A stretch of 64,000 nucleotides of DNA, taken from positions 1-64,000 of IMG/VR virus record IMGVR_UViG_3300033153_015063; one strand, given 5' to 3'. Each line of letters opens with the position of its first letter. Position 1 is the first letter of the stretch. This document shows, one piece after another, positions 5,007-47,916 of the stretch. A program made the translations under genes and the position numbers. The notes under the pieces were generated by a model. The model saw only the letters and a program-made list of their open reading frames with translations. It had not been told where the DNA came from and ran no database searches.

Positions 5007-5046
5007 ATGAAAGATACACACTAGATGGAGTTTAAAAAGATTCTTA

Positions 5047-19828: not shown

Positions 19829-19860
19829 CAAGGAATACAATGGGTGTTGAGTATAAAAGA

Positions 19861-24474: not shown

Positions 24475-24523
24475 ACATGAGGAAAGGCATAAGGTATTTA
24501 TATCCTTATCGCCATGCATCGTC

Positions 24524-24748
24524 ATGCCCCTGATACCTGAAGAGGTCCGTGAAAAAACAGGCCTGATGGTCGTCACCGCCCTGGGACTTTTCCTAGCACT
24601 CCAGTATTCTGTTGTTGTATCAGACATTTTCGAGGCTTATCTCCCAATGGGCGACAGTCTTATTATCCAGTTGGTTTATCTATTATTAATCACGATAATC
24701 GTGGTATACGCAGTCATCTTTGTTGAGAGACGTTTTGGTTCATCTTGA
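24524..24748 (+). CDS. Small membrane protein
   Basis: Two TM segments; divergent from copy 5 across one TATA region. Confidence 0.55.
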   Translation: MPLIPEEVREKTGLMVVTALGLFLALQYSVVVSDIFEAYLPMGDSLIIQLVYLLLITIIVVYAVIFVERRFGSS

Positions 24749-24770: not shown

Positions 24771-25018
24771 GTTGCATTTTTCTATCAATTATAATCATCA
24801 GTGAAACTGACGAGAACCCCCTTATCAACTTCGGTTATAATGTTGCATTTTTCTATCAATTATAATCATCAGTGAAACGTTACGGACCTTTGTGCTAAAG
24901 AGGTTAAGGTCATTGTTGCATTTTTCTATCAATCATAATCCTCAGTGAAGCCCTCAGTATGTAGGGTGAGCTCAAGAAGGCTGGAGTGGTTGTATTTTTC
25001 TATCAATCGTAATCATCA
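24771..25018 (-). CRISPR. Satellite CRISPR array B: 4 repeats (one degenerate), 3 spacers
   Basis: 37-bp repeat at 24771, 24842, 24915, degenerate at 24989; spacers 34, 36, 37 bp. Confidence 0.9.
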
Positions 25019-25927
25019 AAAGTCCAGAACGCTGGTGTTTTTATCTGTTTCTTTGCTTATTAGATTTTTCCAGTCTTCAGGATTTTTCAGGAACGACCTA
25101 AAATCCAGACCTTCGAGTAGACCAAAGAACTGGTCGAAGTCGGGCTCGCCCTGGTCTGGGATGGTAATACCCTGCTGTTCGGGGTACTCAGGAACCAGTG
25201 GAAGAGTAATGAGCTCGATGTTCCGTTTGATGAGCTCGATGTTATCAGGTTCATTGACCCGGGCCATCACCCCTTTCAATCCATCAAACGGTAGTGCTTT
25301 GACGCTGATAACCTTCTTAGCTATCTTAATGGCCCTCTTCTTCCCAATACCATTGACACCATCAATGTTATCAGATGGGTCCCCCATCATCGCCTTCATA
25401 AAAAGGAACTGTTCTTTTATATCTCTATACTCATCCGGGTAGTCTTTGAAGTCGTCGATGGTGAAGGGTTCTTTCCCCCTTGGGTTCCAGATGGTAATAA
25501 CATCGTCCACGAGCTGACGGAAATCCCTATCTGATGATACAATGACAATATTATCCTCAATCTTATCACAATACATATCTGTCATAATTGCTATGACATC
25601 GTCAGCTTCAACATCAGGATACCGGAGGTGAGGAATACCCAGGGCGTCGAGAATCCTGGTGAATATCTCAATCTGAGCATAAAAGGTTTTTTCCATGTCA
25701 ACGGATCGGTTGGCCCTGCTACTGGTTTTTTTGTAAGTAGGGTGTATCTCCAACCTACGCTTACTGATACCACCATCAAACACATAAACAACATCATGTC
25801 CAGGGAATTTAGTGATGGTGTTACGGAACATAGCCAGCATCGAGAAGACGGTCCCGTTGGTGAGTTTTTGGCCCATCGTACTGTGGGCCATCCAGGCCTG
25901 GTTATTACCATCAAAGATGATTACCAT
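25016..25927 (-). CDS. 5'-3' exonuclease / flap endonuclease (Pol I N-domain type)
   Basis: FDGNN, VFDGG, YK, EADDVIA, SSDRDF, GDPSDNIDGVNGIGKKRA. Confidence 0.9.
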   Translation of the reverse strand: MVIIFDGNNQAWMAHSTMGQKLTNGTVFSMLAMFRNTITKFPGHDVVYVFDGGISKRRLEIHPTYKKTSSRANRSVDMEKTFYAQIEIFTRILDALGIPHLRYPDVEADDVIAIMTDMYCDKIEDNIVIVSSDRDFRQLVDDVITIWNPRGKEPFTIDDFKDYPDEYRDIKEQFLFMKAMMGDPSDNIDGVNGIGKKRAIKIAKKVISVKALPFDGLKGVMARVNEPDNIELIKRNIELITLPLVPEYPEQQGITIPDQGEPDFDQFFGLLEGLDFRSFLKNPEDWKNLISKETDKNTSVLDF

Positions 25928-25963
25928 ACCGGTCGATTACCGACCAAGTTTATAAAGAACAGC

Positions 25964-26464
25964 CTATCGTTTTTTATCTATTCGTCGGCGTGTCAAGCTT
26001 CTCGGTTTCAGGTCGGGTTCAAGTTCCCTGATAAGCACGTTCATCCTTTTCCCCTTCTCGGTGAGACCGCCCTGCCACACCCAATACCGCTCACCGCCAT
26101 GCGGGAACCTTCCTTCATCGGATTCCCAATCTACGAGTCCGTGCCGATACAGAACTGCCAACGTCCTGACGTTGAACAACTGCTGGTCGGTGGTCCCTAT
26201 TGTATGGATTGGTGCATTCGGATGAAGAGTCGAGAGCATGAGGACCCCTTCTTTCTGTGCATTCGAGAGTTTTCTGTATGTCTGGCGTAATTGTACGTCA
26301 AGCACGTCGATCCCCTTTATATCGTCACCAATCATCCCCTTCAAGAACTCCTCCTCCGAAAGCTCAGGTGCTTCTCCCACAGGCCCCTTGTAGACCGTAG
26401 ATCCACCTTCGTACTCGTACCTGTATTTATTCCCTGAACCCTCAGGTATCTCTACAGTGGTCAT
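25964..26464 (-). CDS. VEIPPGSG-module protein, copy 6
   Basis: MTTVEIPEGSGNKYRYEYEGG; CGAACTCTTTAAATAC promoter. Confidence 0.85.
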   Translation of the reverse strand: MTTVEIPEGSGNKYRYEYEGGSTVYKGPVGEAPELSEEEFLKGMIGDDIKGIDVLDVQLRQTYRKLSNAQKEGVLMLSTLHPNAPIHTIGTTDQQLFNVRTLAVLYRHGLVDWESDEGRFPHGGERYWVWQGGLTEKGKRMNVLIRELEPDLKPRSLTRRRIDKKR

Positions 26465-26622
26465 TGGAGAGTGATAGGGCCGGAGAGTATTTAAAGAGTT
26501 CGGGAGGTTTATTACCACCGTCATCATCTATTGACCGCCACCGAAGTCAATCATACCAGTCAATGAAGGCACTATACACTTCCTCTCCATCTTCCTTTTT
26601 CATCAAAGTTAGACCACTTTGT

Positions 26623-27498
26623 TCAGAAATCCTCGGCTACATCGAATCTTTTCTTCTCCCGCATCTCCAGTGAATCTGCACGTTCTGTAAAGACAACATT
26701 CCCACCGACCTTCTCTCTGATAATAGTCCGTAGGTTCTTATCCACATCATAGCCTATCCCCTGCCGATCCAGGTCCCTGGCGACCGCCAACGTCGTCCCG
26801 GACCCGCAGAAAGGGTCCAGAACTACCTCGTTTTTGTGTGAAAACAGCGTTATCAGGCGAAAGGGTATCTCCGGGGGAAAGGCTGCGATATCCTCTTCTA
26901 AACGCCCCGGAATGGGCAAAACATTGGTGATGTCCCAGACGTTCAGATACCACTTCTCGGACTGGAACCGTTCCAGGTCAATCCCGGAGAGATTCTTCAG
27001 GTCCTTCGAGACCGCCTTGTGATTGTGCTTCCCCTTTTGCCAGATGAGAATAGATTCCTGGATGTTGTCGGGATAGTAGTACATGGGATATGGATGCTGC
27101 ACTACGACGCCAGAACGTCTACTGGTTCTGATGTACCCTTCGGGCTTTCTCCAGACGATACGGTCTCTGTAGATCCACTTCAGATCCGCCTGGTCATGCA
27201 GCTCCAGAGAAGAATTAATTATCGACCTGGTGTTCATCCACAAGTCAGATACGATGGGATACTTGACCCCATCTACTATGATATCGTCTATGACGATGCA
27301 GGCGATACGTCCCCTCTTCAGAACCCTGTGCATCTCCTTTAGGACCCGTGTCATAAACGAGAGATAGGTGCCATAGTTTTCGAAGAGACCTGGGTAGTCG
27401 AACGGAGCGTTGTAGTAAGGCGGAGAGGTCACAATGAGGTCCACACTCTCATCCTTGATTTCTTCCATGTTTTCACATGACCCAAAAATAACCTTCAT
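26623..27498 (-). CDS. N4/N6 DNA methyltransferase (beta class)
   Basis: TSPPY, AAFP, DPFCGSGTT. Confidence 0.9.
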   Translation of the reverse strand: MKVIFGSCENMEEIKDESVDLIVTSPPYYNAPFDYPGLFENYGTYLSFMTRVLKEMHRVLKRGRIACIVIDDIIVDGVKYPIVSDLWMNTRSIINSSLELHDQADLKWIYRDRIVWRKPEGYIRTSRRSGVVVQHPYPMYYYPDNIQESILIWQKGKHNHKAVSKDLKNLSGIDLERFQSEKWYLNVWDITNVLPIPGRLEEDIAAFPPEIPFRLITLFSHKNEVVLDPFCGSGTTLAVARDLDRQGIGYDVDKNLRTIIREKVGGNVVFTERADSLEMREKKRFDVAEDF

Positions 27499-27501
27499 TG
27501 C

Positions 27502-27936
27502 TCAGTGTCCCCACTCTTCAATCTTCTTTTTCATATCAGGAAGGATATAAACATCTTTGAGTTTTATCTCTTTCAACTCTTTCCGGCAATTTGGACATCT
27601 ATCAATAACCATTCTCAAAGCCCCGATTTTCTCCTCCAAAATCTTTACATCTTTCCGTGTATAGAGTAGATCCATAGCGAGTACTTCCTTTGGATGTATC
27701 TCGACAAATGTTCCTTCTTTTTTGATATCCTGCTTTATTTTTCTGTTGTTTATGAAGAGTATGATACAGGCAATACCACACATCACGCCTGGCATCATAC
27801 CAAAGAGATGAATCTCATATAGGAGATAGATAACAATCAAACTGAACCATATCGACACTGATAGGAGTATTCCCACGAGTATCCCCACGAGCCAATTGAA
27901 TGCTTGGCCCTTTTCCTCTTCAGGACACATAGACAA
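27502..27936 (-). CDS. Membrane-anchored hypothetical protein
   Basis: Two TM helices, upstream promoter box. Confidence 0.55.
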   Translation of the reverse strand: MSMCPEEEKGQAFNWLVGILVGILLSVSIWFSLIVIYLLYEIHLFGMMPGVMCGIACIILFINNRKIKQDIKKEGTFVEIHPKEVLAMDLLYTRKDVKILEEKIGALRMVIDRCPNCRKELKEIKLKDVYILPDMKKKIEEWGH

Positions 27937-28003
27937 TGATGAGCCCGGTGAGTTTAAAAAGATTGAGTAGAAGAAAGGGTTGATATCGGATGGAAACGAT
28001 ACT

Positions 28004-28443
28004 GTTACATTTTTCTATCAGTCATCAATGGAACCGTTCTCCACAAGTCCCTATTGTTACATTTTTCTATCAATCATAATCCTCAGCGAAACGGACGTCT
28101 AACAATGAGTCGTAGAGAGTACAATGATCGTTGCATTTTTCTATCAATTATAATCCTCAGTGAAACATGGCATGGCTGTCGCTGAAGGGAGAGATGCTTA
28201 TTATAATCCTCAGTGAAACCAGTACAAAGTGAAGAAGAAGAGAGGCTTTTGCTGCTTCGTTGCATTTTTCTATCAATCATAATCCTCAGTGAAACAAAAT
28301 GCGTTGAGAGAGTTGGGGATACCATTTCGTATGTTGCATTTTTCTATCAATTATAATCCTCAGTGAAACTACTCCATGTTGACGGTCCACATCCAGGTAT
28401 TTGTGTGTTGCATTTTTCTATCAATCATAATCCTCAGTGAAAC
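28004..28443 (-). CRISPR. Main CRISPR array A: 7 repeats (one partial, distal ones degenerate), 6 spacers
   Basis: Repeat GTTTCACTGAGGATTATAATTGATAGAAAAATGCAAC (minus) at 28407, 28333, 28259, 28200 (partial), 28130, 28056, 28004; 3' ATGCAAC end as in Cas12f/Cas14 repeats. Confidence 0.95.
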
Positions 28444-28444
28444 C

Positions 28445-30166
28445 CTACTTTTTCACTCTATGTAGGGTCCCTTTCGCCTTTTTTAGGAGCTCAGTTGTCT
28501 GCTTCAACCTCTCCGTTCTGTTCTTAACTCTGTCGCTCATAATAAGGTCACGGTTTTCAACCAACACCCCGGCGAAATGAGCTGCGTTGGTAGCTGCGTT
28601 CCGGTCAGCGTTGAGTTGGCGGCCGCAGTCACCACATCTGAACCATGAGTGCCAGTGTTCCCAGAAGACGCCAGATTTCCCTACATCTCCATGTTTACCC
28701 CACCCACCACACACTGAACACCGTTTGCAAGCCAGCGTCAAAGGAATCTTCTGGATAACGATGTTGGGAATCTCTCTCAGCTTATATGTGAGTTGCCAAT
28801 CTACGATATGGAAAGGCCACCTATTGGCCATCCTCCTGATAAAGTCCGGTAGGAGTTCCTCCTCGCAACCTACCATGTTTTCCAATCTACCAGCTTTGTC
28901 CCTACTTCCGGTGAAATCGTGGATGCAGACCAGGATGTTCCCGCCGAGTTCTTTGAGTTTGTTGGCAATCATCCTGGTTGCGTTGTGTAGCTCGTGCCTT
29001 AGAACCAACGACGCTTTTGTGAGATAAATAGATGCCTTCTTATACTTGATAGAAAGGTTCTTTTTTGTTATCGGGCGTTGATCTTTTCCACGACGGGTTG
29101 CCTTGGATTGTCTTTCCGCATACTTATCGTCACTTGACTTCCAGTCACGAAGCATTTTCTTTCCTTTATGTATGTAATGAAACAACTCTCGGCCAGTTCT
29201 GGCATCCAACACAACCAACGACATTGGACGATAGATACCACCATGAACACCAACAATATAGTCTATTTCATCTTTTTTGTAATCATAAACGTCCACATCA
29301 ACGGATAGTGTGATGTGAAGCCACCACTTACCATCCTTTGGTATCAAAGTCCCTGAACCATGTTTCAGGATCGCTTCAAGTGTAAGCTCGCACCATCCCT
29401 CCTGATAGTGTTTCTTACCGAACTCTTTCAACACCCCGGATCGGTCCCTGATTTGTGATGACTCTACCTGGGCTGAAAAAATACCATTACGATTTATTAC
29501 TCCAACACTAAAGACAATCCCAAAATTATTACCGTTTTTCTTAATTTTGATGGACCTGTTATGCAGTTCAATAACATTATACTTTTCATAGCTTGGTCTG
29601 TTCTTGTTATTGACGGGTTTCCTTGGCCCTTTTTTGGTTGATGTTCTGTTCATAATCTCATCAACCAACTTTGTTTTAATATCTGGGATCTGTTTTCTGG
29701 CTATTTTAAGTAGGATTTTTCTATACTCTCCTATTTCCTTTTTGTATTTCTTATTTCCCTTTTTTCTGGGGTAAGCCGGTGGATTGGCTACTTGACTGGT
29801 CAACCATGGCCACCATAACTTATATTTGTTGAGTAGAACATAGCTATCGGTACGCCAGAGACGGCTTATCCAATTGGACAATGAGGAACGAAAGTTGGCC
29901 AGAACAACCGATACCTGTTCCTGAACAGTAGTTGATGAAAGTAGTGTGGTATTGATTTTCTGATCTTTATTAATTCCTTGAGAAAGACGTAGAATATGTG
30001 GCGGGAGTTTAGGAGACTTAGGAATCTTACTGCCTTTGTAGTAAGATGGTATCATAATTGATGCATAGTCAGCTACATCTCTGGCCTGCCCAAGGGCCAC
30101 AAACAGACGTTCAGAGTCCTCTTTCTTGAACGTCAATGGGACCTGGATTGTTCTGATTGATTTCAT
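28445..30166 (-). CDS. cas12: Type V Cas12f-like effector with non-canonical, probably inactive RuvC
   Basis: IRTIQVPL N-terminus, RuvC-I VGVHGG, RuvC-II CIHDF, Zn finger CSVC...CGDC, RuvC-III NADRNAA; array starts 2 nt after stop. Confidence 0.85.
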   Translation of the reverse strand: MKSIRTIQVPLTFKKEDSERLFVALGQARDVADYASIMIPSYYKGSKIPKSPKLPPHILRLSQGINKDQKINTTLLSSTTVQEQVSVVLANFRSSLSNWISRLWRTDSYVLLNKYKLWWPWLTSQVANPPAYPRKKGNKKYKKEIGEYRKILLKIARKQIPDIKTKLVDEIMNRTSTKKGPRKPVNNKNRPSYEKYNVIELHNRSIKIKKNGNNFGIVFSVGVINRNGIFSAQVESSQIRDRSGVLKEFGKKHYQEGWCELTLEAILKHGSGTLIPKDGKWWLHITLSVDVDVYDYKKDEIDYIVGVHGGIYRPMSLVVLDARTGRELFHYIHKGKKMLRDWKSSDDKYAERQSKATRRGKDQRPITKKNLSIKYKKASIYLTKASLVLRHELHNATRMIANKLKELGGNILVCIHDFTGSRDKAGRLENMVGCEEELLPDFIRRMANRWPFHIVDWQLTYKLREIPNIVIQKIPLTLACKRCSVCGGWGKHGDVGKSGVFWEHWHSWFRCGDCGRQLNADRNAATNAAHFAGVLVENRDLIMSDRVKNRTERLKQTTELLKKAKGTLHRVKK

Positions 30167-30179
30167 GTGACAGTAAGTG

Positions 30180-30420
30180 TGGGGGGCAAAAGCCCCCCTT
30201 GATAGATTTCGACCGCCCCGCACTTTTCCCCTAACTCCGAAGAGATTGGTGACTTATGTACAGTTGGATAGCAGTACTCTGGGCCCAAACTGATGCACAG
30301 CCTGGGGGAACATACAACAGTCCCTGTTACCGGCGGTACGCAACCCCGGATTTCCGGTCTGGGAATCGAACCCAGCCTGGTTGGCCCAATTGACAACCAG
30401 TTCCAACATCCGAACATCTG
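30180..30420 (-). ncRNA. Putative tracrRNA
   Basis: TATA at 30443-30450; hairpin CCAGGCUG-UGCAU-CAGUUUGG whose loop pairs with repeat AUGCA; UCUAUCAA (30199-30206) pairs with repeat UUGAUAGA; terminal GGGGGGC-UUUU-GCCCCCC hairpin. Confidence 0.75.
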
Positions 30421-30452
30421 GTACTTGATAGCGAGGAATGTGTTTATAAACA

Positions 30453-30749
30453 TTACGTGTCAACTCTCTCAACCGATACCTTCATTTTATAACCCTCGCC
30501 AGCATCCTCACTGACCTTTGAACCATAGGCAAAGCACATCTCAAGGAGGTCTTCATCAGGCCAGCAGAGTATGAACTTCTCATCTACGTTCTCCCACCAG
30601 GCCCAGTATGTGTCATCTACATCATGGTTTTCGGTCAATCGGTATTTTCCAATCTCACCAGAAGAAACCATCTCAACCTGGTGTTTGTAAAGGTAGAAGT
30701 GTCGAGGGCCCTTCTCAGTCTCAAGAGCAAACATCTCACTACTTCTCAT
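30453..30749 (-). CDS. Hypothetical protein
   Basis: Operon member. Confidence 0.5.
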   Translation of the reverse strand: MRSSEMFALETEKGPRHFYLYKHQVEMVSSGEIGKYRLTENHDVDDTYWAWWENVDEKFILCWPDEDLLEMCFAYGSKVSEDAGEGYKMKVSVERVDT

Positions 30750-30811
30750 GTTGAACGCCTCTCCACACCATCGTTCTCTTTCTCGGTCATGTTTACATCA
30801 CCTCTGTTGCA

Positions 30812-31768
30812 TCATGGTGGGTTCTTCGCCGGTGTCAGGTAAGATTCGTAACCATTTTTCTTGAAACACCGTTTACATAAATCGAACCACTGAGAGGTGA
30901 ATGCACCGGTAAATACGTTCCTGGACCAGAAGTATTCACCAATGAGCCATCCGCTGACCCCTTCCCCAGATCCATGCTTCCCTGGAATGTGGAATTTACC
31001 AGAGTCACTTACAGACAACTCAATTGTTGGGTACTGATCGAGAATCTTTGTGATAGAATCCTCGTCAAGGGGCTTATGACTATATCTTTCTGACGAGTGA
31101 TATGCAAGGGTGTGCCGATGGAGTCCTTGGATGGTGTCGAAGAATTTCAAACACCTTGGCCCATTCTCACCTGGGTAGTAACAGTAGAATGGCCTACCTC
31201 CGCATTCATCAGCGATGCATTTCAGTCCATCGGGATACTCCGACATCAACTCATTGTACAGGTCTGGATGGGCATCCCTCAGGTCGTTGTGGAACTCCTC
31301 TCGGTGCTTCCGTTCCTTTTCTTCCTCATCATGGGCCAGCTTAGCTCTGTATTTGCTCCATGCATCATCCTTGAGTGGGTTGAGTACCCTATTGAGAAGA
31401 TCACACGTGAGGTCCATTACCTCCGTTTTAAGCCGGTCAATGAAGCTCCATGCAACGCCAAACTCCCCTTCGTCCATCAGATGGTGACACTTTGCCTGGC
31501 CGAGTGCGAAAGCTTCCATCGGACTGATTATCTTTTCTTTGTGAACCTCCACCAACACCAGTGACCTGTCAGCGTTACAATAAGGGCAGGAAAAACGGTC
31601 ATTCACGTTTTCCAAAAGTTCTTCACCTTCCACGTCCATGACATAGGTGTTCTCCCTCCAGAAGCCTTTTTTCTGGTGTTCCATCGAGACTTGGAACTTG
31701 TTGGAACAGGTAACACAGGAAAGGGACACAAACTCATCATCAGTCATTCTCGTCACCTTCATAATCAC
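30812..31768 (-). CDS. Hypothetical Zn-finger protein
   Basis: CxxC pairs and a C2H2-like segment. Confidence 0.55.
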   Translation of the reverse strand: MIMKVTRMTDDEFVSLSCVTCSNKFQVSMEHQKKGFWRENTYVMDVEGEELLENVNDRFSCPYCNADRSLVLVEVHKEKIISPMEAFALGQAKCHHLMDEGEFGVAWSFIDRLKTEVMDLTCDLLNRVLNPLKDDAWSKYRAKLAHDEEEKERKHREEFHNDLRDAHPDLYNELMSEYPDGLKCIADECGGRPFYCYYPGENGPRCLKFFDTIQGLHRHTLAYHSSERYSHKPLDEDSITKILDQYPTIELSVSDSGKFHIPGKHGSGEGVSGWLIGEYFWSRNVFTGAFTSQWFDLCKRCFKKNGYESYLTPAKNPP

Positions 31769-32022
31769 TCATAAGCTCAAGGTCTGCGATGATACGATTC
31801 ACCTGGGGCCCAGAGAACTCGACGGACATAGCATCGGCAAGCTGCTGGCCATCTAACTGCAGTTTTAGAGTATCTCTGTAGAAATCTGCCGAGAACTCAT
31901 AGATACAGGCAATACCGTATCCGATGAACTCGTTGAAGAGGTCCTGCCGACACTGAGATTCGTTACACCCATCTGTTTGAGTTGCCATCATACATCACCT
32001 GTTGCCTCTTACTAACAATCAG

Positions 32023-32064
32023 CCTTTATATACTTTCAGGCTTAGTAACCGTAAAAAGCGTAAA
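32023..32064 (-). promoter_or_regulatory. Operator-class promoter 6
   Basis: Part of a ~100-bp repeat shared with 49681-49783. Confidence 0.8.
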
Positions 32065-32136
32065 AGACCCTTTCACTCTCCGTGCAGTCGGTCTAGCTTG
32101 AATCGACGGTCCACTCTGGACATTTTCGTTGCCCAT

Positions 32137-32925
32137 CTAAAATTCCAGTACGTCATAGTTATTGAAGAACCTCTCAAAGTCAGGATTCACCTCATACCCG
32201 ATAGACCTACGGCCCATCCGTCGTGCAACTCTGGTTGTTGTGCCAGTCCCGAGAAAAGGGTCCATCACTACCTCGGTAAGATAGGAAAAGCCCCTGATGA
32301 TACGTATTGGGATCTCCTTTGGAAAAGGGGCAGGATGGTCACGGTTTCCACTTGGAGCTGGCTTTATCTTCCAGACCGAGCTCTTCTTTATCTCCACCCA
32401 CTGGTCCTTACTGAGCTTCGAGGCTTCCTTTATCTCGCCAGAGAGATGAGATAGGTCACGCTTCCCAGATTTCTCAAATTCAAGGATAAATTCATGCATG
32501 AAATTGATTGGAAGGGCCCCTGGATAGGGGTAAGATCCGATAGGAGACTGAACAGAATTGGCCTTCTCCCAGATGATCTCTCGCTTGAACGCAAACCCCA
32601 ACCCCACACAATCGTCGATGGTCCAGCCGACCAGATTGATGGAGTGGAACAATTGCTTATCAGAGGCCGGGACAGGCAGGTTCATCAGATTGACAAACAT
32701 CTTACGCCCAGGGGCAAGTACACGGAGGCACTCTTTCCATACGTCTCTCATTTTGAGACGCCATGAATCTGGATTGGTCGTGTTACCGAGGTCGTCTGGT
32801 AGATTTGAGTATTTCTTTGCGTTGTAGTATGGCGGGCTGGTCACCACGAGATGAACAGAACAATCATCCACCTCGGACATATCCCTCGAATCTCTGACGT
32901 GATAGATAGGCTCAAAAAACTCCAT
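32137..32925 (-). CDS. N4/N6 DNA methyltransferase (beta class)
   Basis: TSPPY, HPAPFP, DPFLGTGTT. Confidence 0.9.
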   Translation of the reverse strand: MEFFEPIYHVRDSRDMSEVDDCSVHLVVTSPPYYNAKKYSNLPDDLGNTTNPDSWRLKMRDVWKECLRVLAPGRKMFVNLMNLPVPASDKQLFHSINLVGWTIDDCVGLGFAFKREIIWEKANSVQSPIGSYPYPGALPINFMHEFILEFEKSGKRDLSHLSGEIKEASKLSKDQWVEIKKSSVWKIKPAPSGNRDHPAPFPKEIPIRIIRGFSYLTEVVMDPFLGTGTTTRVARRMGRRSIGYEVNPDFERFFNNYDVLEF

Positions 32926-33289
32926 CTGTCTCACTGTGATAATCACATTCCCGTGAACAATATTCATCATCGTCGTAACAGAGTTTGTTGCATCCATTCC
33001 CCTGACATCTACCAGTAGGTTCGAAATCTTCTTCTTCTGTATCTATGTAGTCGATGATTGGGCATAACCACTGGTTGGCAGTTGGGTCAACTATCTCGCC
33101 ATCTGGAGTAGTAAGCCACCAATGATCTTCCAGTAGTTTTGGTCGGGCGGCTAGGGTAACAAAACCACTACAGAGTCTGAGTTCAGGAAAGATATCGTTC
33201 ATCTCTATACAGAGTTCTTTACACCTGTTAATCTTTTTTTCAAGTGTCGTTTTCTCAATCCACTCTTCGTAGATAGGTGACAAACTCAT
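32912..33289 (-). CDS. Hypothetical protein
   Basis: C...HWW...DPT pattern; upstream promoter box. Confidence 0.5.
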   Translation of the reverse strand: MSLSPIYEEWIEKTTLEKKINRCKELCIEMNDIFPELRLCSGFVTLAARPKLLEDHWWLTTPDGEIVDPTANQWLCPIIDYIDTEEEDFEPTGRCQGNGCNKLCYDDDEYCSRECDYHSETDGVF

Positions 33290-33327
33290 GTATATCAAAC
33301 AGCGGAGTGTGTTTAAAAAGAACGTGG

Positions 33328-33615
33328 TCAAAAATTCAACACCTCACCTCTTTTCTCTATCAATTCCACCAGAACGTCACCATGACACGGTTTTGGTTTA
33401 CACCAACACCCAAGCACCTTCCCTTCCAACTCACCAATACGAGATAAAAGTTCTGGTTTGTTATTGATATATCTACGATACATCTCGACAACCTCGGCCC
33501 TACTTCCATCCTTTCCAACTATGAAGGGATTTCCCCAGACACTCGGTCTTCCGATATAGATATCCCACTCTTCATCAAAAATATGTACCACTCTGGTTGT
33601 CATTTTGGTTCCCAT
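33328..33615 (-). CDS. DUF4326-family protein
   Basis: YIGRPSVWGNPF, LGCWCKPKPCHGDVL. Confidence 0.85.
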   Translation of the reverse strand: MGTKMTTRVVHIFDEEWDIYIGRPSVWGNPFIVGKDGSRAEVVEMYRRYINNKPELLSRIGELEGKVLGCWCKPKPCHGDVLVELIEKRGEVLNF

Positions 33616-33871
33616 CCTAACAGTTCAGCGAAAGTCTTGATAAGTTTATAGTCGTCTTCGTTTATCTCCATCCAGTACACCCAGAAGGATTCATGGTCGT
33701 ACAAATACATTCTATCGTCATCGGCACACACTTCCAGGTCAGCCAGTCCTTTATCTTTATCGGGGTCTCGAACAATTATCATTTTATCAATATGTTTCGT
33801 TTCCACCATTTTTTCACCTTCAAAAGTCCATGATTGTGCATCCTTCTGATACATCCACTCTAACCGTAGCA

Positions 33872-34207
33872 TTACTTATTACTACCACTATTCAGACCGC
33901 CATTTTTAATATATATCATTGTATCGAATAGCCTGAAACCTATATCCTTGAAGAATAATGCCTGCCGAAAACTTGTTCCTGTTTCGCTACCATCTACAGT
34001 GGCGTCACCCACGACCCAGACAACCACGCCGCCCTTTTTTGTTACTCGAAACAGTTCTTCTGCTACGTTCTTAAAGTCGAAGTTGTAGCCATCATACTCT
34101 CTGAGGTCATCGTATGGTGGACTTGTCACGGTCAGATCCACAAAGTTATCTGGCATACCCGCCATTGTAATCAAGCAGTCTTCATTGTATATCATATTCA
34201 TTTCCAT
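33872..34207 (-). pseudogene. Truncated DNA methyltransferase (N-half only)
   Basis: IYNEDC, TSPPY, stops after DTMIYIK; no motif I follows. Confidence 0.7.
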
Positions 34208-34691
34208 CTTCTTTCTCCAGATTTTCCAGTAGCTTTTCTGCATCCTTCTTCAATCGGTCCAATTCCTCCAGAACCTCATCACGTAGTGAACCATCATTGT
34301 TACGGACCTTTCCACCACGCCTCAGACAAGCCCAGTTACGTCGGAGGTCCTCTCTCTTTGACCAGACCCGCCATCTCAACGCTTTGTACCCTTCCCAAAA
34401 CATAGTGGCGTTCGACGGCCTGTAGTTGTTGTTCATTTTGGGCGGCCTATAGTAGAACTCTTCAAGGTCATAGATGTTTGAGTAGTAGAGAAGCGTCTGA
34501 ACGGAATGGGGGACCTTCATGGCCGTATGGTACTCCCATCCATTTGCTTCCATCAGATACTTGGTCTCTGATGCACAACAGAATCCTGTGGTCATCAGCT
34601 CGTAGACCAACAACCGTGCTGCGGCCTCGTTGGCACCAATGTTGTTCCGCCTGCCGCCCCCTGTTCCCTTTTGCTGTCCTGAAGTCAACAT
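34182..34691 (-). CDS. Hypothetical protein
   Basis: TATA about 30 nt upstream. Confidence 0.5.
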   Translation of the reverse strand: MLTSGQQKGTGGGRRNNIGANEAAARLLVYELMTTGFCCASETKYLMEANGWEYHTAMKVPHSVQTLLYYSNIYDLEEFYYRPPKMNNNYRPSNATMFWEGYKALRWRVWSKREDLRRNWACLRRGGKVRNNDGSLRDEVLEELDRLKKDAEKLLENLEKEDGNEYDIQ

Positions 34692-34757
34692 GTATCTACA
34701 TACCTCCGATTGTATTTAAATATATTTCCTTGCCTTGATAAAACCTTGATACTTCTC

Positions 34758-34810
34758 AGCTCCTGTGGAAACACGGCATGATGGGCCTGCTTGAAGGGTT
34801 TAGTATTCTG
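34758..34810 (-). repeat. Orphan ~52-bp copy of methyltransferase segment (37302-37354)
   Basis: Encodes QNTKPFKQAHHAVFPQEL; one mismatch to source. Confidence 0.8.
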
Positions 34811-34827
34811 AAGGATAGGCCTCGTCA

Positions 34828-35550
34828 TCATCGAGTCTTGTCTGAGTTAGCAGATTGAAAAAGTAACTCATCAAAACACTCATCTTCAAATTCAAATCTC
34901 AGTTGTGCTTCTTTCTCCTGTATGTCCATAACCCTACCATGCTTTTCTTTCACAAGTTTTTTTCCACAAGTTGGGCAAAAAAACATTTTATATTCATCAC
35001 CAAGATAGTTGGTATATTTGGTCTTTACATCCTCAAAAACAAGAACGCAGTCTCTACAGAATAATACAATTTCGTTTTTGATATCCTCAGTTTGGCACTC
35101 GCTGCAGAGAAGATTCTCGTTGACATCACAGTATTTACAATAAGTATCGTAGCCACCGCCACACCCACCACATCTTGGGCATATTGGTGGTGGGATTAGT
35201 TTTTCAGCACATATATCACAGGTATCTTCATCACACTCGCTGCAGAGAAATAAATGTGGGTTATGTGCATCAATACTGCAAATTTTACAAAAATCCTCTA
35301 TTTTGATTTTGCGGTTACATCTTCTACAGGTTGTGGTTAGTGTAATCAATATCTCTTCACAATGAAAGGAACAACTCTCGATATTCTTATTGTAGCGTAA
35401 CGAAGGTTTTTGATTATCGGTTTCCGGTTCCGGGTAGTATCTTCGAGCTGTTCTGATATTTCCACATTGAACATCTTGTGTACCATCATCCTTCATCGGG
35501 ACTTTTTCAGCCGGTGCTTGTGTATGGTTGGGGTCCGGTACGATAGCCAT
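34828..35550 (-). CDS. Cys-rich multi-Zn-finger protein
   Basis: Many CxxC; internal LCSEC duplication. Confidence 0.6.
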   Translation of the reverse strand: MAIVPDPNHTQAPAEKVPMKDDGTQDVQCGNIRTARRYYPEPETDNQKPSLRYNKNIESCSFHCEEILITLTTTCRRCNRKIKIEDFCKICSIDAHNPHLFLCSECDEDTCDICAEKLIPPPICPRCGGCGGGYDTYCKYCDVNENLLCSECQTEDIKNEIVLFCRDCVLVFEDVKTKYTNYLGDEYKMFFCPTCGKKLVKEKHGRVMDIQEKEAQLRFEFEDECFDELLFQSANSDKTR

Positions 35551-35815
35551 GAAGGTAGAAGGGCCGCCTGTCTTTATAAAGAGTTTGAGCTCAGTCCCAT
35601 GTTGCCATCAGTTCACTTTCTACCTCTACCCATTCGACAGAATCCTGGGTCACCTACGTTTGCCAACAAGGGGCTCCATCACCTCTCCGATTTCAATGGC
35701 ACTCCTTCCCTTTTCCTTATGTTCCCTCTTCAACCATTCCTTGTTTTTGTATAGGTATTTATTCTTACTCATAGCTAACCTCCAATTTGCTATTTTTTTC
35801 ACTCATCTCATCATC

Positions 35816-37084
35816 TCAGAAATCCATCACATCGCTTTTTACCATGATACTACCATCTTCGTCTATAGGAACCATTTCGCCTATCCTTTTCATAGCAATG
35901 TCATAGTAACGTTTTTCCCTCTCAAAACCAATATAATCCCTACCACATCTGGCTGCTGCGATAGCTGTAGTGCCCGACCCCATGAATGGGTCCAGGATGA
36001 TACCTCCACTTGGAGTTGCTGTGAGTCTGCAAAGATATTCTATCAACTCCAATGGTTTTACAGTTTCATGGTCGTTGTACTCACATCGTTCTGACCTCGA
36101 TGCTTTAGCACAGTAAAAAAATCTTGAAGGTCGGTCATCATTACCAACCTCATTGTCCAATAAATTACCTACATCCTCATCCAATATGAGATTGGCCGGA
36201 TAACGCCCTTTTGGATTATGGCGTTCCTCACCTAGATTTCGTGGTGGGGTCTTACCTTTACCCCATATCCCAGCACCAGGGACACTGGTCCTCCGTTCGC
36301 TATCTAGAACCTTACTCTCTATCCTCGCACCGTCGATGTTCAATCCGGCCACACCCCATTTCAAAGCATTCTCAACAAAGGTTCCATCGAGAGGTTTCAT
36401 AGCAACGAGGATGGTTTCCCATGCTGGTTTGAGTGAACTCCTCCAACCATCCCATATCTTTGCCTCCTCAGTCGCTGGAGTGGTAATATTGATCTCTCGT
36501 CTGCCAGCTTTCCAACCACCAGGAGCTTCATAGCCGCCATCCTTCTGGTTGATAAATATCCTTGCTCGCTTTTCATCGACACCAACGACCTCCCTCTCGG
36601 CTCCGGCGGCCTTGTCAATTCCCTTCGAGATATCGGTTCCCTTACCCCAACCCGACCCATACAACCACATCATTGTATCTCTAATTATCCATCCAGCATC
36701 CTCGATGGCACAGGCCAACCGATGCCAAGTTCTGGTACCAGAAAAAGCGAGAAAGAAAGCTCCTGGTTTTGCTACTCTTAAAGCCTCTACGGACCACTTA
36801 TAGTGCCACTCGTAAAGTTTTTGCATTTGTTTAATATGATTATGAGAACCGCCAAATTTTGGTGATGGTAAGTGCCTCGGCCATTTAATTCGCCTTTCTC
36901 CTATACCTGGTTTTTGAAATGGCTGAACGTCGCCTTCTTTCCAAGGCGAGTCCCACTCTGACATAAACGATAATCCATAAGGTGGATCTGTGATGATGGT
37001 ATCAATGCAATTATCAGGAAGATGCACAGGCATACCAACCAGGCAATCCTCGTTGTAGATGATGTCGGTTTCAATCTCGTCCAT
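35816..37084 (-). CDS. N4/N6 DNA methyltransferase (intact paralogue of split gene)
   Basis: TDPPY, GRYPAN, HETVKP, DPFMGSGTT. Confidence 0.9.
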   Translation of the reverse strand: MDEIETDIIYNEDCLVGMPVHLPDNCIDTIITDPPYGLSFMSEWDSPWKEGDVQPFQKPGIGERRIKWPRHLPSPKFGGSHNHIKQMQKLYEWHYKWSVEALRVAKPGAFFLAFSGTRTWHRLACAIEDAGWIIRDTMMWLYGSGWGKGTDISKGIDKAAGAEREVVGVDEKRARIFINQKDGGYEAPGGWKAGRREINITTPATEEAKIWDGWRSSLKPAWETILVAMKPLDGTFVENALKWGVAGLNIDGARIESKVLDSERRTSVPGAGIWGKGKTPPRNLGEERHNPKGRYPANLILDEDVGNLLDNEVGNDDRPSRFFYCAKASRSERCEYNDHETVKPLELIEYLCRLTATPSGGIILDPFMGSGTTAIAAARCGRDYIGFEREKRYYDIAMKRIGEMVPIDEDGSIMVKSDVMDF

Positions 37085-37096
37085 CTCGTTTCACCC

Positions 37097-38326
37097 TCAG
37101 AAATCCATCACGCTACTATCTCTCAACAAACCTTCGGTCTCGGCCCTGTCTATAGCCATCCTCACGTACTTCTCTGAAGTATCGCACCCCAACCAATCCC
37201 TACCCTCCTGGGTAGATACAACGGCTGTGGTCCCACTTCCCATGAAAGGGTCGAGAACGACACCGTCCGATGGGCAACATGCCTTGATGATTGGCCTGAT
37301 GAGCTCCTGTGGAAACACGGCATGATGGGCCTGCTTGAAGGGTTTGGTATTCTGTAAGATTGATACCACCCCATTCTCATCGTCCAATGCCCCATACTTC
37401 CCCATGTCATATCTGGCAGTAGATAACTCGTGTAGTAGTGTCTCCAGATTCTCTATGATGACGTCAATGGAATCTGAGTACCAGTCAATGGTTCTACGGT
37501 AGTGCCCCTGTTCTCTGATTGCTTCCCGATCATAGTAGTAGGATTCCTGCTTCGTGAGTACAAGGAAATATTCGTGTGCGATAGTAGGGCGATCCTTGGC
37601 GGATTCTGGCCGGATATTCCATTTCAACCATGGTACGACGGCCCGCCAATACCACCCAGCAGCCTGGAGAGACATTGCCAGACGCCAGGGGATACCAACC
37701 AAATCCTTCGGTTTTACACCCTCTGGGACCCTCACGGACATCCAGTTACCAACGTCCCCTACCTTCCCATCGACCTGTCCCCATGTCCTGTTTGCAGCGT
37801 ATGTATCACCGATATTCAGCCACAGAGACCCGGTGTCTTTGAGTACCCGCCAGTATTTCCCGAACACTGACGTCAGGTTGGAAACGTAGATGTTGGGTTC
37901 TGGTTCCAGACCAAGATGCCCCTTCCAAGCATCACACCATTTACAGTAGTATGACGTATATCCCTCGCCTCTGATGACACTCTCGCTCATCACCCGGTTC
38001 GCACCTACAGAAGAAGGTCGGTCAGGGTGGTTTTTACCACCCCTCGCAGGTGTAAAATGTTCCATCCACTCATGGGTACATTCATAGGGTTCCAAATCGT
38101 AACATTCTTTGTTCTGGGGATGGTAACAAAGTAACTCTTCACCATCACTGACCTGTTTACATTGCGGGCATCTCCGAAACCTTTTCCCACCCCACACCTC
38201 GGCTTTACCTAGATACTCTCTCAACATCCAGAATGGTGGTGATGTGACTATCAGGTCTACTATCCCATCTGGTAGAGTGTCGGCATACTCCATCGTATTC
38301 GATAAAGCGACTGTGTTGAGTGCCAC
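37097..38326 (-). CDS. N4/N6 DNA methyltransferase with Cys-rich insert
   Basis: TSPPF, HHAVFP, DPFMGSGTT; GTG start 30 nt after TTTATAAA. Confidence 0.88.
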   Translation of the reverse strand: MALNTVALSNTMEYADTLPDGIVDLIVTSPPFWMLREYLGKAEVWGGKRFRRCPQCKQVSDGEELLCYHPQNKECYDLEPYECTHEWMEHFTPARGGKNHPDRPSSVGANRVMSESVIRGEGYTSYYCKWCDAWKGHLGLEPEPNIYVSNLTSVFGKYWRVLKDTGSLWLNIGDTYAANRTWGQVDGKVGDVGNWMSVRVPEGVKPKDLVGIPWRLAMSLQAAGWYWRAVVPWLKWNIRPESAKDRPTIAHEYFLVLTKQESYYYDREAIREQGHYRRTIDWYSDSIDVIIENLETLLHELSTARYDMGKYGALDDENGVVSILQNTKPFKQAHHAVFPQELIRPIIKACCPSDGVVLDPFMGSGTTAVVSTQEGRDWLGCDTSEKYVRMAIDRAETEGLLRDSSVMDF

Positions 38327-38396
38327 TATCGAGAAATGGCCGCCCGTCTTTATAAAGAGTTTGAAAGCGTTCTGGAACTCCTTCATTTCCAGAACT

Positions 38397-38568
38397 CATT
38401 TTTCTATCAATCATAATTCTCAGTGAAACTGGCACAACGTCAATACTACCGTTCTACAACGACATTTGTTGCATTTTTCTATCAATTATAATCCTCAGTG
38501 AAACAAGGTGGGGTGGGCAAGACACTAAACCATCTATCTGTTTATGCTTTATGCCAGTTGCATTTTCT
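38397..38568 (-). CRISPR. Satellite CRISPR array C: 2 repeats plus a remnant
   Basis: Repeats at 38397-38429 and 38468-38504, 38-bp spacer; GTTGCATTTTCT remnant at 38557. Confidence 0.8.
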
Positions 38569-38589: not shown

Positions 38590-39129
38590 TTACTCCCACG
38601 TTGCCTCCAGCTCACTCTTTATATCATCCCACTCAGCCATGTCATGGGTACTGTGGGATTGCCAACACCTCGACCCATCTTCTCCAATGTCGACGAGTAA
38701 TCCTTTGTTCTCCAGTAACGTGGAAATAGTACTGACACGTTCCATGCTAATACCGATATTTTCCCCTATTGTATCTTCATAGGCGGCGTAGGATTTGAAC
38801 ACGAACATAAGCACCTTCAACTCATCTGAATGCTCTTGTTCCTCTATCTCATACCTTACACGTGTAAAGGCTTCACTTCTCATTTTTGTTATTTTATCTC
38901 CATCTCTCAGGAAGTAAATCCTCGTCGTTCTTTTTCCCACTATCGGGTCCTTGACAGCATACACCTCTCTGTCAGTTTGTCTATTGTTCTCTGACAACAT
39001 TTTATTATCATGCTGAAGACAGCATTTAACGGCACCTTGCATTGTATTGTGGACCTTTTTGCACCAACCATCACGTTTACCGAGACAGACAAATCCAGAT
39101 TTCCTTCCTCTCTTACCCATATCACTCAC
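38590..39129 (-). CDS. Hypothetical protein
   Basis: Operon member. Confidence 0.55.
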   Translation of the reverse strand: MSDMGKRGRKSGFVCLGKRDGWCKKVHNTMQGAVKCCLQHDNKMLSENNRQTDREVYAVKDPIVGKRTTRIYFLRDGDKITKMRSEAFTRVRYEIEEQEHSDELKVLMFVFKSYAAYEDTIGENIGISMERVSTISTLLENKGLLVDIGEDGSRCWQSHSTHDMAEWDDIKSELEATWE

Positions 39130-46803: not shown

Positions 46804-46844
46804 CAAGGAATACAATGGGTGTTGAGTATATAAAGAGTTCGGGA

Positions 46845-47756: not shown

Positions 47757-47916
47757 TCGTTCACCTCCTGAAAGCCTCGAACACTTCATTGAGAGTGTCA
47801 CCAGAGTTCCATAGCAAGGTGTCTTCGATTTCCTGCCTTGTCAGGAGATTTATCTGGTCACAATCGCAGCGTCTTTCCTGTGTAATTACACTCTCATTTT
47901 TATCCATATTTCTCCC

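Follow-up and report, generated by a model that had tools for sequence, protein, structure and literature searches.

The closest described relatives of the system reported here belong to type V-F (Cas12f/Cas14), in which a small TnpB-derived effector with WED/REC, RuvC and zinc-finger (TNB) domains is guided by a crRNA and a long tracrRNA joined through two repeat:anti-repeat duplexes, of which one is a pseudoknot, and sits as a homodimer on a single guide RNA. The guide scaffolds of Cas12f and TnpB are both of the pseudoknot type. With TnpB, the start of the DNA for the omega RNA coincides with the 3' end of the nuclease gene or falls within it, and the guide lies within that gene's transcript. 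CasPhi and CasLambda work without a tracrRNA, and their RuvC sites are intact.

Several other type V lineages and relatives, including Cas12m (V-M), Cas12c (V-C), Cas12k, dCas12f and TldR, have an altered RuvC domain and a preserved guide apparatus; such binding-only systems are often found on mobile elements and block transcription, as shown or predicted (PMC12669027, PMC11656645, PMC13472631). In dCas12f and TldR, a C-terminal truncation removes part of RuvC, and a single guide RNA serves without a tracrRNA (PMC13472631). The CRISPR systems of huge phages have compact arrays, lack Cas1, Cas2 and Cas4 and have been proposed to act against hosts or rival phages, and a phage Cas14 without a catalytic residue has been noted before (PMC7162821). 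Viruses may also carry mini-arrays or solitary repeat units that copy the host repeat and rely on host Cas proteins (PMC11656645, PMC10120712). In the literature searched, no description was found of arrays of one repeat placed between unrelated genes of a phage that carries the matching effector.

The window analysed here is a stretch of 64,000 nucleotides (positions 1 to 64,000 of IMG/VR record IMGVR_UViG_3300033153_015063) from a 242,596-bp phage contig, on which one 37-nt repeat occurs in at least five places. The original prediction of a single repeat forming three separate arrays in this window was real but understated, and we conclude that the contig encodes a phage type V CRISPR variant whose new features are dispersed arrays, a covarying putative tracrRNA and an altered RuvC triad. 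The repeat, GTTTCACTGAGGATTATGATTGATAGAAAAATGCAAC on the minus strand, was found in 9 copies at up to 3 mismatches (0 expected from shuffles), and its 14-nt core, TTGATAGAAAAATG, gave 15 matches at up to 2 mismatches (0.69 expected), 12 of them inside arrays. The repeat-bearing sites are the following.

28004-28443, minus strand: array A, the main array, with five full repeats, one 5'-only copy and a terminal 3' half-repeat
28443-28407, 28369-28333, 28295-28259, 28166-28130 and 28092-28056, minus strand: full repeats of array A (ungapped scan)
28219-28200, minus strand: truncated copy in array A, of which only the 5' 20 nt are kept
ending at 28004, minus strand: terminal 3' half-repeat of array A
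24771-25025, minus strand: array B, a degenerate first repeat followed by three good repeats, with spacers of 34-37 nt
25025-24989, minus strand: opening repeat of array B, with 28/37 identical positions (27/30 counted from position 8) and a degenerate 5' part
24951-24915, 24878-24842 and 24807-24771, minus strand: later repeats of array B
38393-38568, minus strand: array C, a 12-nt relic followed by two repeats around a 38-nt spacer, the first full and the second (terminal) short of its last 4 nt
38504-38468 (full) and 38429-38393 (minus the last 4 nt), minus strand: repeats of array C
about 38568-38557, minus strand: weak 12-nt relic of array C, AGAAAATGCAAC
L003:1650-1815, minus strand: array D, a fourth array (mini-array) on the same contig, missed in the original prediction
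L016:4981-5005, opposite strand: unit E, a fifth site on the same contig with a solitary 3' half-repeat, likewise missed

Arrays A to D have a repeat period of 71-75 nt and unique spacers of 32-39 nt, the pattern that defines a CRISPR array. The three minus-strand arrays of the window were borne out by the repeat counts and by the ungapped scan, in which the repeats of A, B and C share the orientation of the effector gene. All 15 spacers are distinct, and none had a second match in the window, L003 or the loci of relatives. In array A (spacers of 32-39 nt), perfect repeats adjoin the effector gene, decayed ones lie distally, and deletion scars are visible. Two repeats of array B carry private variants, TGATGATTATAAT. 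The first unit of array D is a 3' half-repeat and its terminal repeat is truncated, and unit E runs antisense to the genes beside it. The genes that flank the arrays of the window are listed below.

28445-30166, minus strand: effector gene (ATG at 30166), encoding a 573-aa Cas12f-like, TnpB-derived protein identical to P0001
25016-25927, minus strand: 5'-3' exonuclease (FEN-like) gene (PF02739 at 5e-24, PF01367, phrog_107 exonuclease)
38590-39129, minus strand: 179-aa ORF directly upstream of array C, with no Pfam, PHROG, NCBIfam or PADLOC match
ATG at 38386, minus strand: DNA methyltransferase gene (PF01555) after array C

The attachment of the arrays to gene ends was found as described earlier. 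Array A begins just past the effector stop, with TAG at 28447-28445, the first repeat from 28443 and one base between them; the exonuclease stop TGA (25018-25016) lies within the first repeat of array B; and array C is downstream of the 179-aa ORF and ends 6 nt ahead of the methyltransferase ATG. The arrays had also been called leaderless, and the 100 nt upstream of arrays A and B are indeed coding sequence which reaches the first repeat of each, so that no separate leader is present there. Arrays A to D are all in sense orientation, at, overlapping or within about 26 nt of the stop of the upstream co-directional gene, and the gap from the last repeat to the next gene start is 6-143 nt. As arrays so placed have hardly any space, or none, for promoters of their own, the simplest reading is that they are transcribed within the flanking mRNAs, and the layout makes it plausible that the arrays are co-transcribed with their neighbours as polycistronic mRNA. 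Consensus scans for sigma-70 promoters and intrinsic terminators gave background levels only, which weighs neither for nor against this.

Other parts of the original prediction fared less well. Guides had been proposed to arise from 3' UTRs, but the arrays are intercistronic rather than operon-terminal, given the short distance to the next gene. Nor was there a temporal-class signal in favour of guide sets for different life-cycle stages: one 14-kb co-directional block, dominated by DNA methyltransferases and DNA-metabolism genes, holds arrays A, B and C, and the neighbours of array D are nucleotide-metabolism and replication genes. Truncated and half repeats fit the suggested spread by recombination, yet no donor-recipient junction was found. 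Neither the candidate tracrRNA nor the altered RuvC triad figured in the original prediction, and both of them, like the two additional loci, alter the view of the mechanism.

The effector contains a Cas12f1-like_TNB domain (PF07282, E value of 7e-8). PADLOC and NCBIfam returned weak matches to Cas12f, Cas12u3 and Cas12f2 that were far under the cut-offs (40.8 bits against a cut-off of 450 for NCBIfam Cas12f2; E values of 1e-7 to 5e-13 for PADLOC Cas12f/Cas12u3), and a Foldseek search of the PDB with the effector model gave AsCas12f, OsCas12f and CnCas12f as the best matches (E value of ~1e-12), alongside other Cas12 and TnpB structures; identity to solved Cas12f proteins is 12-14%. From these comparisons, the protein is nearest to Cas12f but is not a demonstrated V-F member, and the curated model score does not place it in the Cas12f clade. 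It does have the TnpB-like three-motif RuvC fold, the TNB/zinc finger (CxxC...CxxC, intact) and the array 1 nt past its stop that mark a type V effector. The catalytic D-E-D triad is the exception, its positions being occupied by His308, His416 and Asp521.

This assignment of the triad came from hhalign against canonical TnpB-like proteins (probability 99.8%), which aligned H308 with the RuvC-I Asp and H416 with the RuvC-II Glu, and from a profile alignment in which H308 falls on D326 of Un1Cas12f1. In the structure model, which is of moderate quality (pLDDT 67, pTM 0.47), H308 and H416 end strands 303-308 and 411-416, and D521 starts helix 520-537. The three residues are invariant in all five homologues, proteins that are only 31-65% identical, as are the flanking motifs GxHGGIYR and HDxTGxRD. 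Since the triad reads His-His-Asp in all five, canonical DNA cutting by the effector is doubtful. This is no bar to a place in type V, because several accepted type V subtypes are also without an active RuvC triad (PMC12669027). Two strictly kept histidines are unusual for a dead site and could reflect a different chemistry instead of a loss of function.

The region directly upstream of the effector gene holds a conserved structured RNA.

30179-30349, minus strand: candidate tracrRNA core, a structured RNA kept upstream of the effector in 5 of 5 family loci
30318-30312, minus strand: anti-repeat 1, GTTGTAT, within a hairpin loop
30206-30199, minus strand: anti-repeat 2, TCTATCAA
30198-30181, minus strand: terminal GC hairpin of the tracrRNA candidate, 14 nt ahead of the effector ATG

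Of the 26 pairs in the consensus structure from the five family loci, 11 are backed by compensatory changes. Both anti-repeats occupy the same alignment columns in the four array-bearing loci and covary with the repeat of their own locus. Anti-repeat 2 forms 8, 9, 8 and 9 Watson-Crick pairs with its own repeat versus 3-7 with those of other loci (shuffled-repeat P of 0.0004-0.01 per locus), and for anti-repeat 1, GTTGC goes with GCAAC whereas GTCGC goes with GCGAC. The ATACAAC end of the first repeat of array B pairs perfectly with GTTGTAT. These pairings were obtained by a column-anchored analysis; unanchored duplex prediction between the upstream region and the repeat gave inconsistent, locus-specific pairings. 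Because two anti-repeats covary with each locus's repeat, the conserved RNA is very likely the tracrRNA, the pairing with the repeat that is typical of V-F being found here computationally through conserved structure and covariation. The listed ORF 30163-30453 is probably not a real gene. The isolated repeat folds at 0 kcal/mol, without secondary structure, which favours a tracrRNA over the self-folding handle of CasPhi or Cas12a type; the latter was ruled out on this basis.

The pairing of both anti-repeats is confined to the final ~20 nt of the repeat, and this limit explains the conserved 3' half-repeats. What survives in decayed units, here as well as in relatives, is precisely the 3' part that pairs with the tracrRNA, and arrays B and D each open with a 3' half-repeat (with a degenerate 5' part in B) that retains both pairing segments. 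The dead unit of array A is without its 3' half, the relic of array C is without anti-repeat 2 pairing, and the ends of arrays C and D are truncated, which indicates that part of the system is decaying.

The effector family is very rare: 1.84 billion representatives included only four close relatives, each of them on a phage-like contig. Its peptide patterns were found only on the source contig in IMG/VR, on one known marine-sediment metagenome contig and in no species genomes, and neither megablast with 24 kb of the window nor tblastn with the effector matched phage records. In the relatives L004 and L005, the stop codon of the effector gene and the first repeat (or half-repeat) overlap; a first repeat at the stop codon is a family trait. 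The marine-sediment relative is represented by strains that have an identical effector and are told apart only by whether 1, 3 or 5 perfect repeats adjoin its gene. In this family, arrays thus turn over rather than persist as fossils, and the confinement of the differences to effector-proximal perfect repeats fits polar turnover. Neither the metagenome collection nor 185,579 species genomes of bacteria and archaea contained an exact match to the 22-nt repeat core. Its absence from the species genomes suggests that the guides serve the phage's own effector, and the host-repeat identity of virus-borne mini-arrays was not seen in these collections, outside which the host itself may lie. On other viral contigs, 23 single matches to an 18-nt half-repeat pattern did not extend beyond the pattern and were rejected as chance, as were matches to the 5' half of the repeat. 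The GyrA- and GyrB-like proteins of the phage gave no host signal.

Searches for targets gave chance-level results for the spacers of arrays A, B and C against 50,697 phage records (best E values of 0.3-0.9) and no match for those of array A against 72,556 plasmids. Exact 20-mers of spacers A1, B1 and C1 matched only themselves in IMG/VR, and hence have no second copy on the 242-kb contig. The first spacer of the relative L005 had no match, and the spacers of the marine-sediment relative had no self-targets in the loci compared. Genes for cas1, cas2 and cas4 were absent among 46 Pfam-scanned ORFs (30 in the window at 19.8-47.8 kb, 10 in L003 and 6 in L016). The analysis covered ~83 kb of the 243-kb contig, so cas1 and cas2 may lie elsewhere on it.

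Compared with type V-F, then, the system shares the domain plan, the profile and PDB best matches and the two-duplex tracrRNA but differs in its low identity and score, its H-H-D triad, its huge-phage effector and its dispersed arrays abutting stop codons. It resembles the binding-only lineages in its altered RuvC, but no sequence kinship to them was detected beyond the common TnpB core, and unlike dCas12f and TldR, it keeps the C-terminus, the third Asp and a tracrRNA, the replaced residues being conserved histidines. With CasPhi (Cas12j), CasLambda and phage V-F variants it has in common a huge phage, compact arrays and no Cas1, Cas2 or Cas4 among the ORFs scanned; CasPhi and CasLambda differ in lacking both a tracrRNA and an altered RuvC, and their structures ranked far below Cas12f in the fold search. 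The 1-3 spacers and the solitary unit recall virus-borne mini-arrays, but the repeat fits the effector and tracrRNA that the phage itself encodes and is carried by none of the species genomes searched. As in TnpB, guide DNA begins at or in the 3' end of the effector gene, but the phage system has multi-spacer arrays whose spacers are unrelated, encodes its tracrRNA separately upstream, and has neither transposon ends nor TnpA.

The reading towards which we lean, though only somewhat, is a phage type V (Cas12f-like) system in which one effector and its adjoining tracrRNA use guide units at five or more sites, probably for binding only. The effector and the tracrRNA directly upstream would serve all guide units, no adaptation genes being present in the examined regions. 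Arrays between co-directional genes would be transcribed within polycistronic mRNA, and the two short anti-repeats of the tracrRNA, which pair with the last ~20 nt of each repeat as the covariation shows, would form a pseudoknot-type scaffold. Since only the 3' half is needed for pairing, any unit keeping it could yield a guide consisting of the handle and the downstream spacer, presumably released from the transcripts by processing. With the zinc finger and RuvC fold kept and the triad changed to His-His-Asp, the effector would bind under RNA guidance without canonical DNA cutting, and the bound complex may block transcription or replication of host or rival-element DNA. A bolder version, in which the His-His-Asp pocket still acts (in guide excision or new metal chemistry) and guides follow operons as a timed silencing programme, strikes us as quite improbable.

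It is possible, although we consider it rather unlikely, that only array A is used and that B, C, D and E are debris of illegitimate or repeat-mediated recombination without array renewal. The satellites are very small (1-3 spacers) and begin or end in degenerate repeats, array A itself is scarred, unit E is antisense, and neither adaptation genes among the tested ORFs nor spacer targets in the searched collections were found. Debris is harder to reconcile with internal satellite repeats that are 35-36/37 identical to the consensus, with degenerate first units that keep both tracr-pairing segments, with the turnover of arrays in the related phage, and with three multi-unit satellites that are all sense-oriented and disrupt no gene. 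That A, B and C are one former array split by gene-cassette insertion is very improbable, even though A and B lie 3 kb apart on the same strand and members of a multi-copy gene family, which have a 45-aa module in common, adjoin B and lie near C, a hint of mobile cassettes. Such an insertion should leave matching 5' and 3' repeat parts, whereas A ends in a 3' half-repeat and B starts with a near-complete one that is fused to the exonuclease coding end; moreover, B has its private variants, C lies at a distance of 10 kb, and the contig carries D and E at other places.

Concerning the effector, an alternative that we judge unlikely is that it is still a nuclease, with His-His-Asp as a different site that uses another metal or excises pre-crRNA from mRNAs, and that it cleaves DNA or RNA as other type V systems commonly do. 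Some RNase H-fold nucleases do have a His metal ligand, as in the DEDH tetrad of Argonaute, and the invariance of H308, H416, D521 and their motifs down to 31% identity is unlike the drift usual in dead sites. However, only one of the three carboxylates that make up the two-metal RuvC centre is left, and we know of no characterised Cas12 or TnpB nuclease with such a triad. The kept third RuvC Asp and zinc finger set the protein apart from the C-terminally truncated dCas12f (PMC13472631) and so speak for activity, but several altered-RuvC type V lineages bind only (PMC12669027, PMC11656645). Mimicry of a host repeat, by which the scattered repeats would be RNA anti-CRISPRs or borrowed mini-arrays that poison or use host Cas proteins, has well-documented precedents among virus mini-arrays and solitary units (PMC11656645, PMC10120712), and unit E is such a solitary unit. 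We find it scarcely credible here, as the phage has its own effector with a repeat-matched tracrRNA, the 22-nt core is absent from the species genomes and metagenomes searched, and the effector family is found on phage-like contigs only.

Phage type V systems are a source of compact editing enzymes, and binding-only Cas12 relatives are natural silencers. The system favoured above would join an unusual set of features, namely, a 573-aa effector, a computationally defined tracrRNA, ~20 nt of repeat per guide and a conserved His-His-Asp. If the satellites are expressed, they would be natural multiplexed guides cut from ordinary mRNAs and would show how a virus without adaptation genes keeps and distributes guides; if, in addition, the His-His-Asp pocket is active and guides follow operons, the phage would have a built-in, timed silencing of host or rival genes. 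The locus is also a test case for the relation of CRISPR arrays to the TnpB layout, in which the guide lies within the 3' end of the nuclease gene. As a separate observation, the sole match in an Rfam scan was a tRNA-Leu.

An exact repeat search placed the window on IMGVR_UViG_3300033153_015063, a viral contig of 242,596 bp, and range arithmetic on the locus fetched with the effector showed that contig coordinates 1-64000 are the window coordinates. No nucleotide-level relative of the window was found among 50,697 phage records. The minus strand carries almost all genes from ~3.5 to 51.6 kb of the window. The 37-nt repeat (minus strand, GTTTCAC...ATGCAAC) occurs in nine copies at ≤3 mismatches versus 0 expected, and its 14-nt core gave 15 matches at ≤2 mismatches versus 0.69 expected, with 12/15 lying within arrays; degenerate copies were picked up by an ungapped scan. 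The effector gene and the repeat loci of the phage are as follows:

28445-30166, minus strand: effector gene, encoding the Cas12f-like protein P0001 (573 aa)
28443-28004, minus strand: array A, five full repeats, a 5'-only copy and a terminal 3'-only copy
25025-24771, minus strand: array B, first repeat 27/30 identical from position 8 on
38504-38393, minus strand: array C, a weak 12-nt relic, then one full and one 3'-truncated repeat
L003:1650-1815, minus strand: array D, a mini-array elsewhere on the contig, in which two spacers separate a half-repeat, a full repeat and a 3'-truncated repeat
L016:4981-5005, opposite strand: unit E, a solitary 3' half-repeat (19 nt exact) at a further locus of the contig

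The original prediction described three arrays of one repeat, with distinct spacers, attached to gene 3' ends, and its description of the sequence was correct. The first repeat of array A lies one base past the TAG of the cas-like gene, the stop codon of the 5'-3' exonuclease gene is the TGA at positions 8-10 of the first repeat of array B, and array C, which shares the repeat of A and B, has an unknown ORF on one side and, starting 6 nt past its last repeat, a DNA methyltransferase gene on the other. Every spacer is unique. The three arrays are real, but the count was incomplete, as the proposed search for more repeats revealed the two loci of D and E on the same contig. The accompanying search for cas1 and cas2 found no Cas1, Cas2 or Cas4 domains in 46 ORFs scanned from ~83 kb of the 243-kb contig. 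Since the other 23 matches of the half-repeat search that yielded unit E were on unrelated contigs and none extended past the pattern, a chance match on precisely this contig is very unlikely.

Within array A, the copy at 28219-28200 has kept the 5' 20 nt alone and the terminal copy the 3' 18 nt alone, and the ungapped scan showed perfect repeats proximal to the effector and decayed repeats distal to it. Stop codons were read in two of the three frames of the repeat, so that a gene running into it terminates at once. The ORF that follows array D (L003:1201-1656) stays open across the terminal 3'-truncated repeat, and since its listed TTG start falls within that repeat (L003:1650-1660, minus strand), the next gene may owe its start to the repeat.

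The effector matches a Cas12f1-like TNB domain, and the Cas12f, Cas12u3 and Cas12f2 models matched it weakly, far under their cut-offs. A structure search with its AlphaFold model (pLDDT 67) returned Cas12f first (E about 1e-12, 12-14% identity), followed by other Cas12 proteins and TnpB. HMMER, run in full against 1.84 billion representative proteins, produced only four relatives at E < 1e-30 and eight remote TnpB-like matches, and no family member was found in 185,579 species genomes. The relatives' loci are all on phage-like metagenome contigs (L004; L005; L006-L010 with L013; L011), the third group being from marine sediment and including a 137-kb contig.

Alignment of the five homologues (P0001-P0005) exhibited the invariant motifs GxHGGIYR, HDxTGxRD and NADxNA. 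Profile-profile alignment with canonical TnpB-like proteins (probability 99.8%) placed His308, His416 and Asp521 at the positions of the RuvC-I Asp, RuvC-II Glu and RuvC-III Asp, respectively, and a profile search of the PDB aligned His308 to D326 of Un1Cas12f1, which is Ala in the D326A structure. In the effector model, H308 and H416 close strands 303-308 and 411-416 and D521 opens helix 520-537, as expected for RuvC. The replacements at RuvC I and II, together with the model positions, indicate at the level of sequence and predicted structure that the canonical two-metal centre is absent. Independent RuvC inactivation with retention of binding-type interference has been described for types V-C and V-M and predicted for V-O and V-P (PMC12669027), and inactivation with binding kept is also known for dCas12f and TldR (PMC13472631). 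The effector described here likely acts by binding only. A live alternative is that the His-His-Asp site supports another chemistry, since the two histidines are strictly conserved, whereas dCas12f, TldR and the inactive type V proteins are truncated or drifted.

The repeat alone has no fold. The effector ATG is ~290 nt away from the preceding gene, and this interval includes a stretch that is conserved upstream of the effector at all five loci, with a consensus fold of 26 pairs, 11 of which show compensatory changes, and a terminal GC hairpin 14 nt 5' of the ATG. Two segments of this RNA occupy constant alignment columns and can base-pair with the repeat of their own locus, over its last ~20 nt. 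Anti-repeat 1, a hairpin-loop segment (GTTGTAT, GTTGCA, GTCGCTG and GTCGCA), pairs with ATGCAAC, TGCAAC, TAGCGAC and TGCGAC, respectively, and anti-repeat 2 in four loci (TCTATCAA, TTCCATCAA, AAACATCC and TAGCATCCC) with TTGATAGA, TTGATGGAA, GGATGTTT and GGGATGCTA. The cross-pairing matrix of anti-repeats versus repeats was diagonal-dominant, and shuffled repeats matched the observed anti-repeat 2 helix in just 0.04-1% of trials per locus. These results argue strongly, on computational grounds, that the upstream RNA is a tracrRNA whose repeat:anti-repeat pairing is split and of pseudoknot type, an arrangement also seen in Cas12f and TnpB guide RNAs. With such pairing, one tracrRNA could serve arrays anywhere in the genome and only the 3' ~20 nt of the repeat would be needed before a spacer, which would explain why exactly this part is what decayed units retain, both in this phage and in the relatives, and what the first units of arrays B and D keep. 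The variant end of the first repeat of array B, ATACAAC, perfectly matches the tracr GTTGTAT.

One of the two repeat variants (GGATTATAATTG) contains a perfect TATAAT hexamer, in the following copies:

28369-28333, 28166-28130, 24878-24842, 24807-24771 and 38504-38468: TATAAT-bearing repeats

The hexamer is probably not a guide promoter, since a start ~7 nt downstream would leave a handle too short for anti-repeat 2 pairing. Only the window (about 30353-30378, minus strand) and L004 (about 920-945) have, directly 5' of their tracr core, a hairpin whose loop resembles that of a tRNA T-arm (GGTTCGAxTCC), at which neither ARAGORN nor Rfam called a tRNA. The 14-nt interval that separates the terminal hairpin from the effector ATG (30167-30180, minus strand) contains no Shine-Dalgarno-like sequence; the effector may be translated from a transcript starting with the tracrRNA, or the host may be independent of Shine-Dalgarno pairing.

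Arrays in the relatives also abut the effector. The first repeat of L004 starts within the last sense codon of the effector gene, and in L005 a half-repeat overlaps the TAG of that gene, after which come an AT-rich stretch resembling a leader and an array of 2 kb. The marine-sediment contigs L006, L007, L008, L010 and L013 encode an identical effector and differ solely in the number of perfect repeats beside it (1, 3 or 5), with 11 decayed distal units identical throughout, and thus unit gain or loss in the family arrays takes place at the end nearest the effector. Array A shows this polarity too. The first 8 nt (ATCATCTC) are common to two spacers of this phage, a hint of unit deletion by microhomology. 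Solitary half-repeats lie upstream of the effector in two loci:

L004:1107-1157: solitary 3' half-repeat, between the tracr hairpin and the ATG
L006:9606-9652: solitary 3' half-repeat, upstream of the tracr

Each has a guide-like stretch downstream, for which no target was found within the family loci; they are possible autoregulatory cr-like RNAs.

Arrays A-D are intercistronic, with 0-26 nt from the upstream stop to the first unit and 6-143 nt on to the next start codon. Scans for consensus promoters and terminators gave background levels. Co-transcription of these arrays with their neighbours is the economical inference, and guides would be processed from such transcripts. The suggestion that different operons provide stage-specific guide sets gained no support from gene content: arrays A-C are housed in one 14-kb co-directional block, alongside the exonuclease gene, five genes encoding N6/N4 DNA methyltransferases and small unknown ORFs, and the neighbours of array D are genes for thymidylate synthase, a PD-(D/E)XK nuclease and a clamp loader. 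Unit E is flanked by, and antisense to, genes for a MoxR-like ATPase and a winged-helix regulator. The spacers presumably have biological targets, with none found in the window or family loci, phage records, plasmids or IMG/VR. Viral mini-arrays and solitary repeat units are known to have decoy or host-hijack roles (PMC11656645; PMC10120712), but the absence of this repeat from species genomes and metagenome contigs argues against such a role here.

Huge phages carry compact arrays without adaptation genes and V-F variants, including one without a catalytic residue (PMC7162821), and the present system belongs among their CRISPR systems. In its working it is closest to a tracrRNA-dependent Cas12f system; V-F membership is not demonstrated, as its scores fall below the curated cut-offs. 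What sets it apart is the His-His-Asp triad, the fusion of arrays to gene ends and the spread, over at least five loci, of guide units which rely on the effector encoded by the phage itself.

Five to seven N6/N4 DNA methyltransferase genes are grouped around the cas12-like gene, probably forming an anti-restriction island:

26623-27498, 32137-32997, 33872-34243, 35816-37084 and 37097-38386; also 2537-3520 and 4305-5279: N6/N4 DNA methyltransferase genes
46845-47801: GmrSD_N-like ORF

Further phage gene products are GyrB-like, GyrA-like, a type IA topoisomerase, a PyrI-like aspartate carbamoyltransferase regulatory chain and tRNA-Leu(TAA) (jointly, 11760-13721, 57977-60355, 44115-46145 and 23404-23931, minus strand, and 60859-60947, plus strand). 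A ~45-aa module (consensus MTxVEIPPGSGNRYRYEYEGGxTVYKGPVGxAPExSEEEF, 60-88% identical) forms the N-terminal start of at least 10 ORFs that are otherwise unrelated, and is internal or C-terminal in three more:

15121-15714, 51596-52075, 53294-54109 and 54186-55247, plus strand: module ORFs
17151-17669, 19223-19840, 23998-24627, 25964-26527, 39126-39851, 46195-46815, 56338-57057, 57502-57930 and 61006-61437, minus strand: module ORFs

The two scanned (23998-24627 and 25964-26527) had no Pfam match. The module might serve as a targeting or propeptide signal common to these proteins, or else represent the conserved end of a mobile gene cassette; ORFs bearing it adjoin array B and stand near array C.
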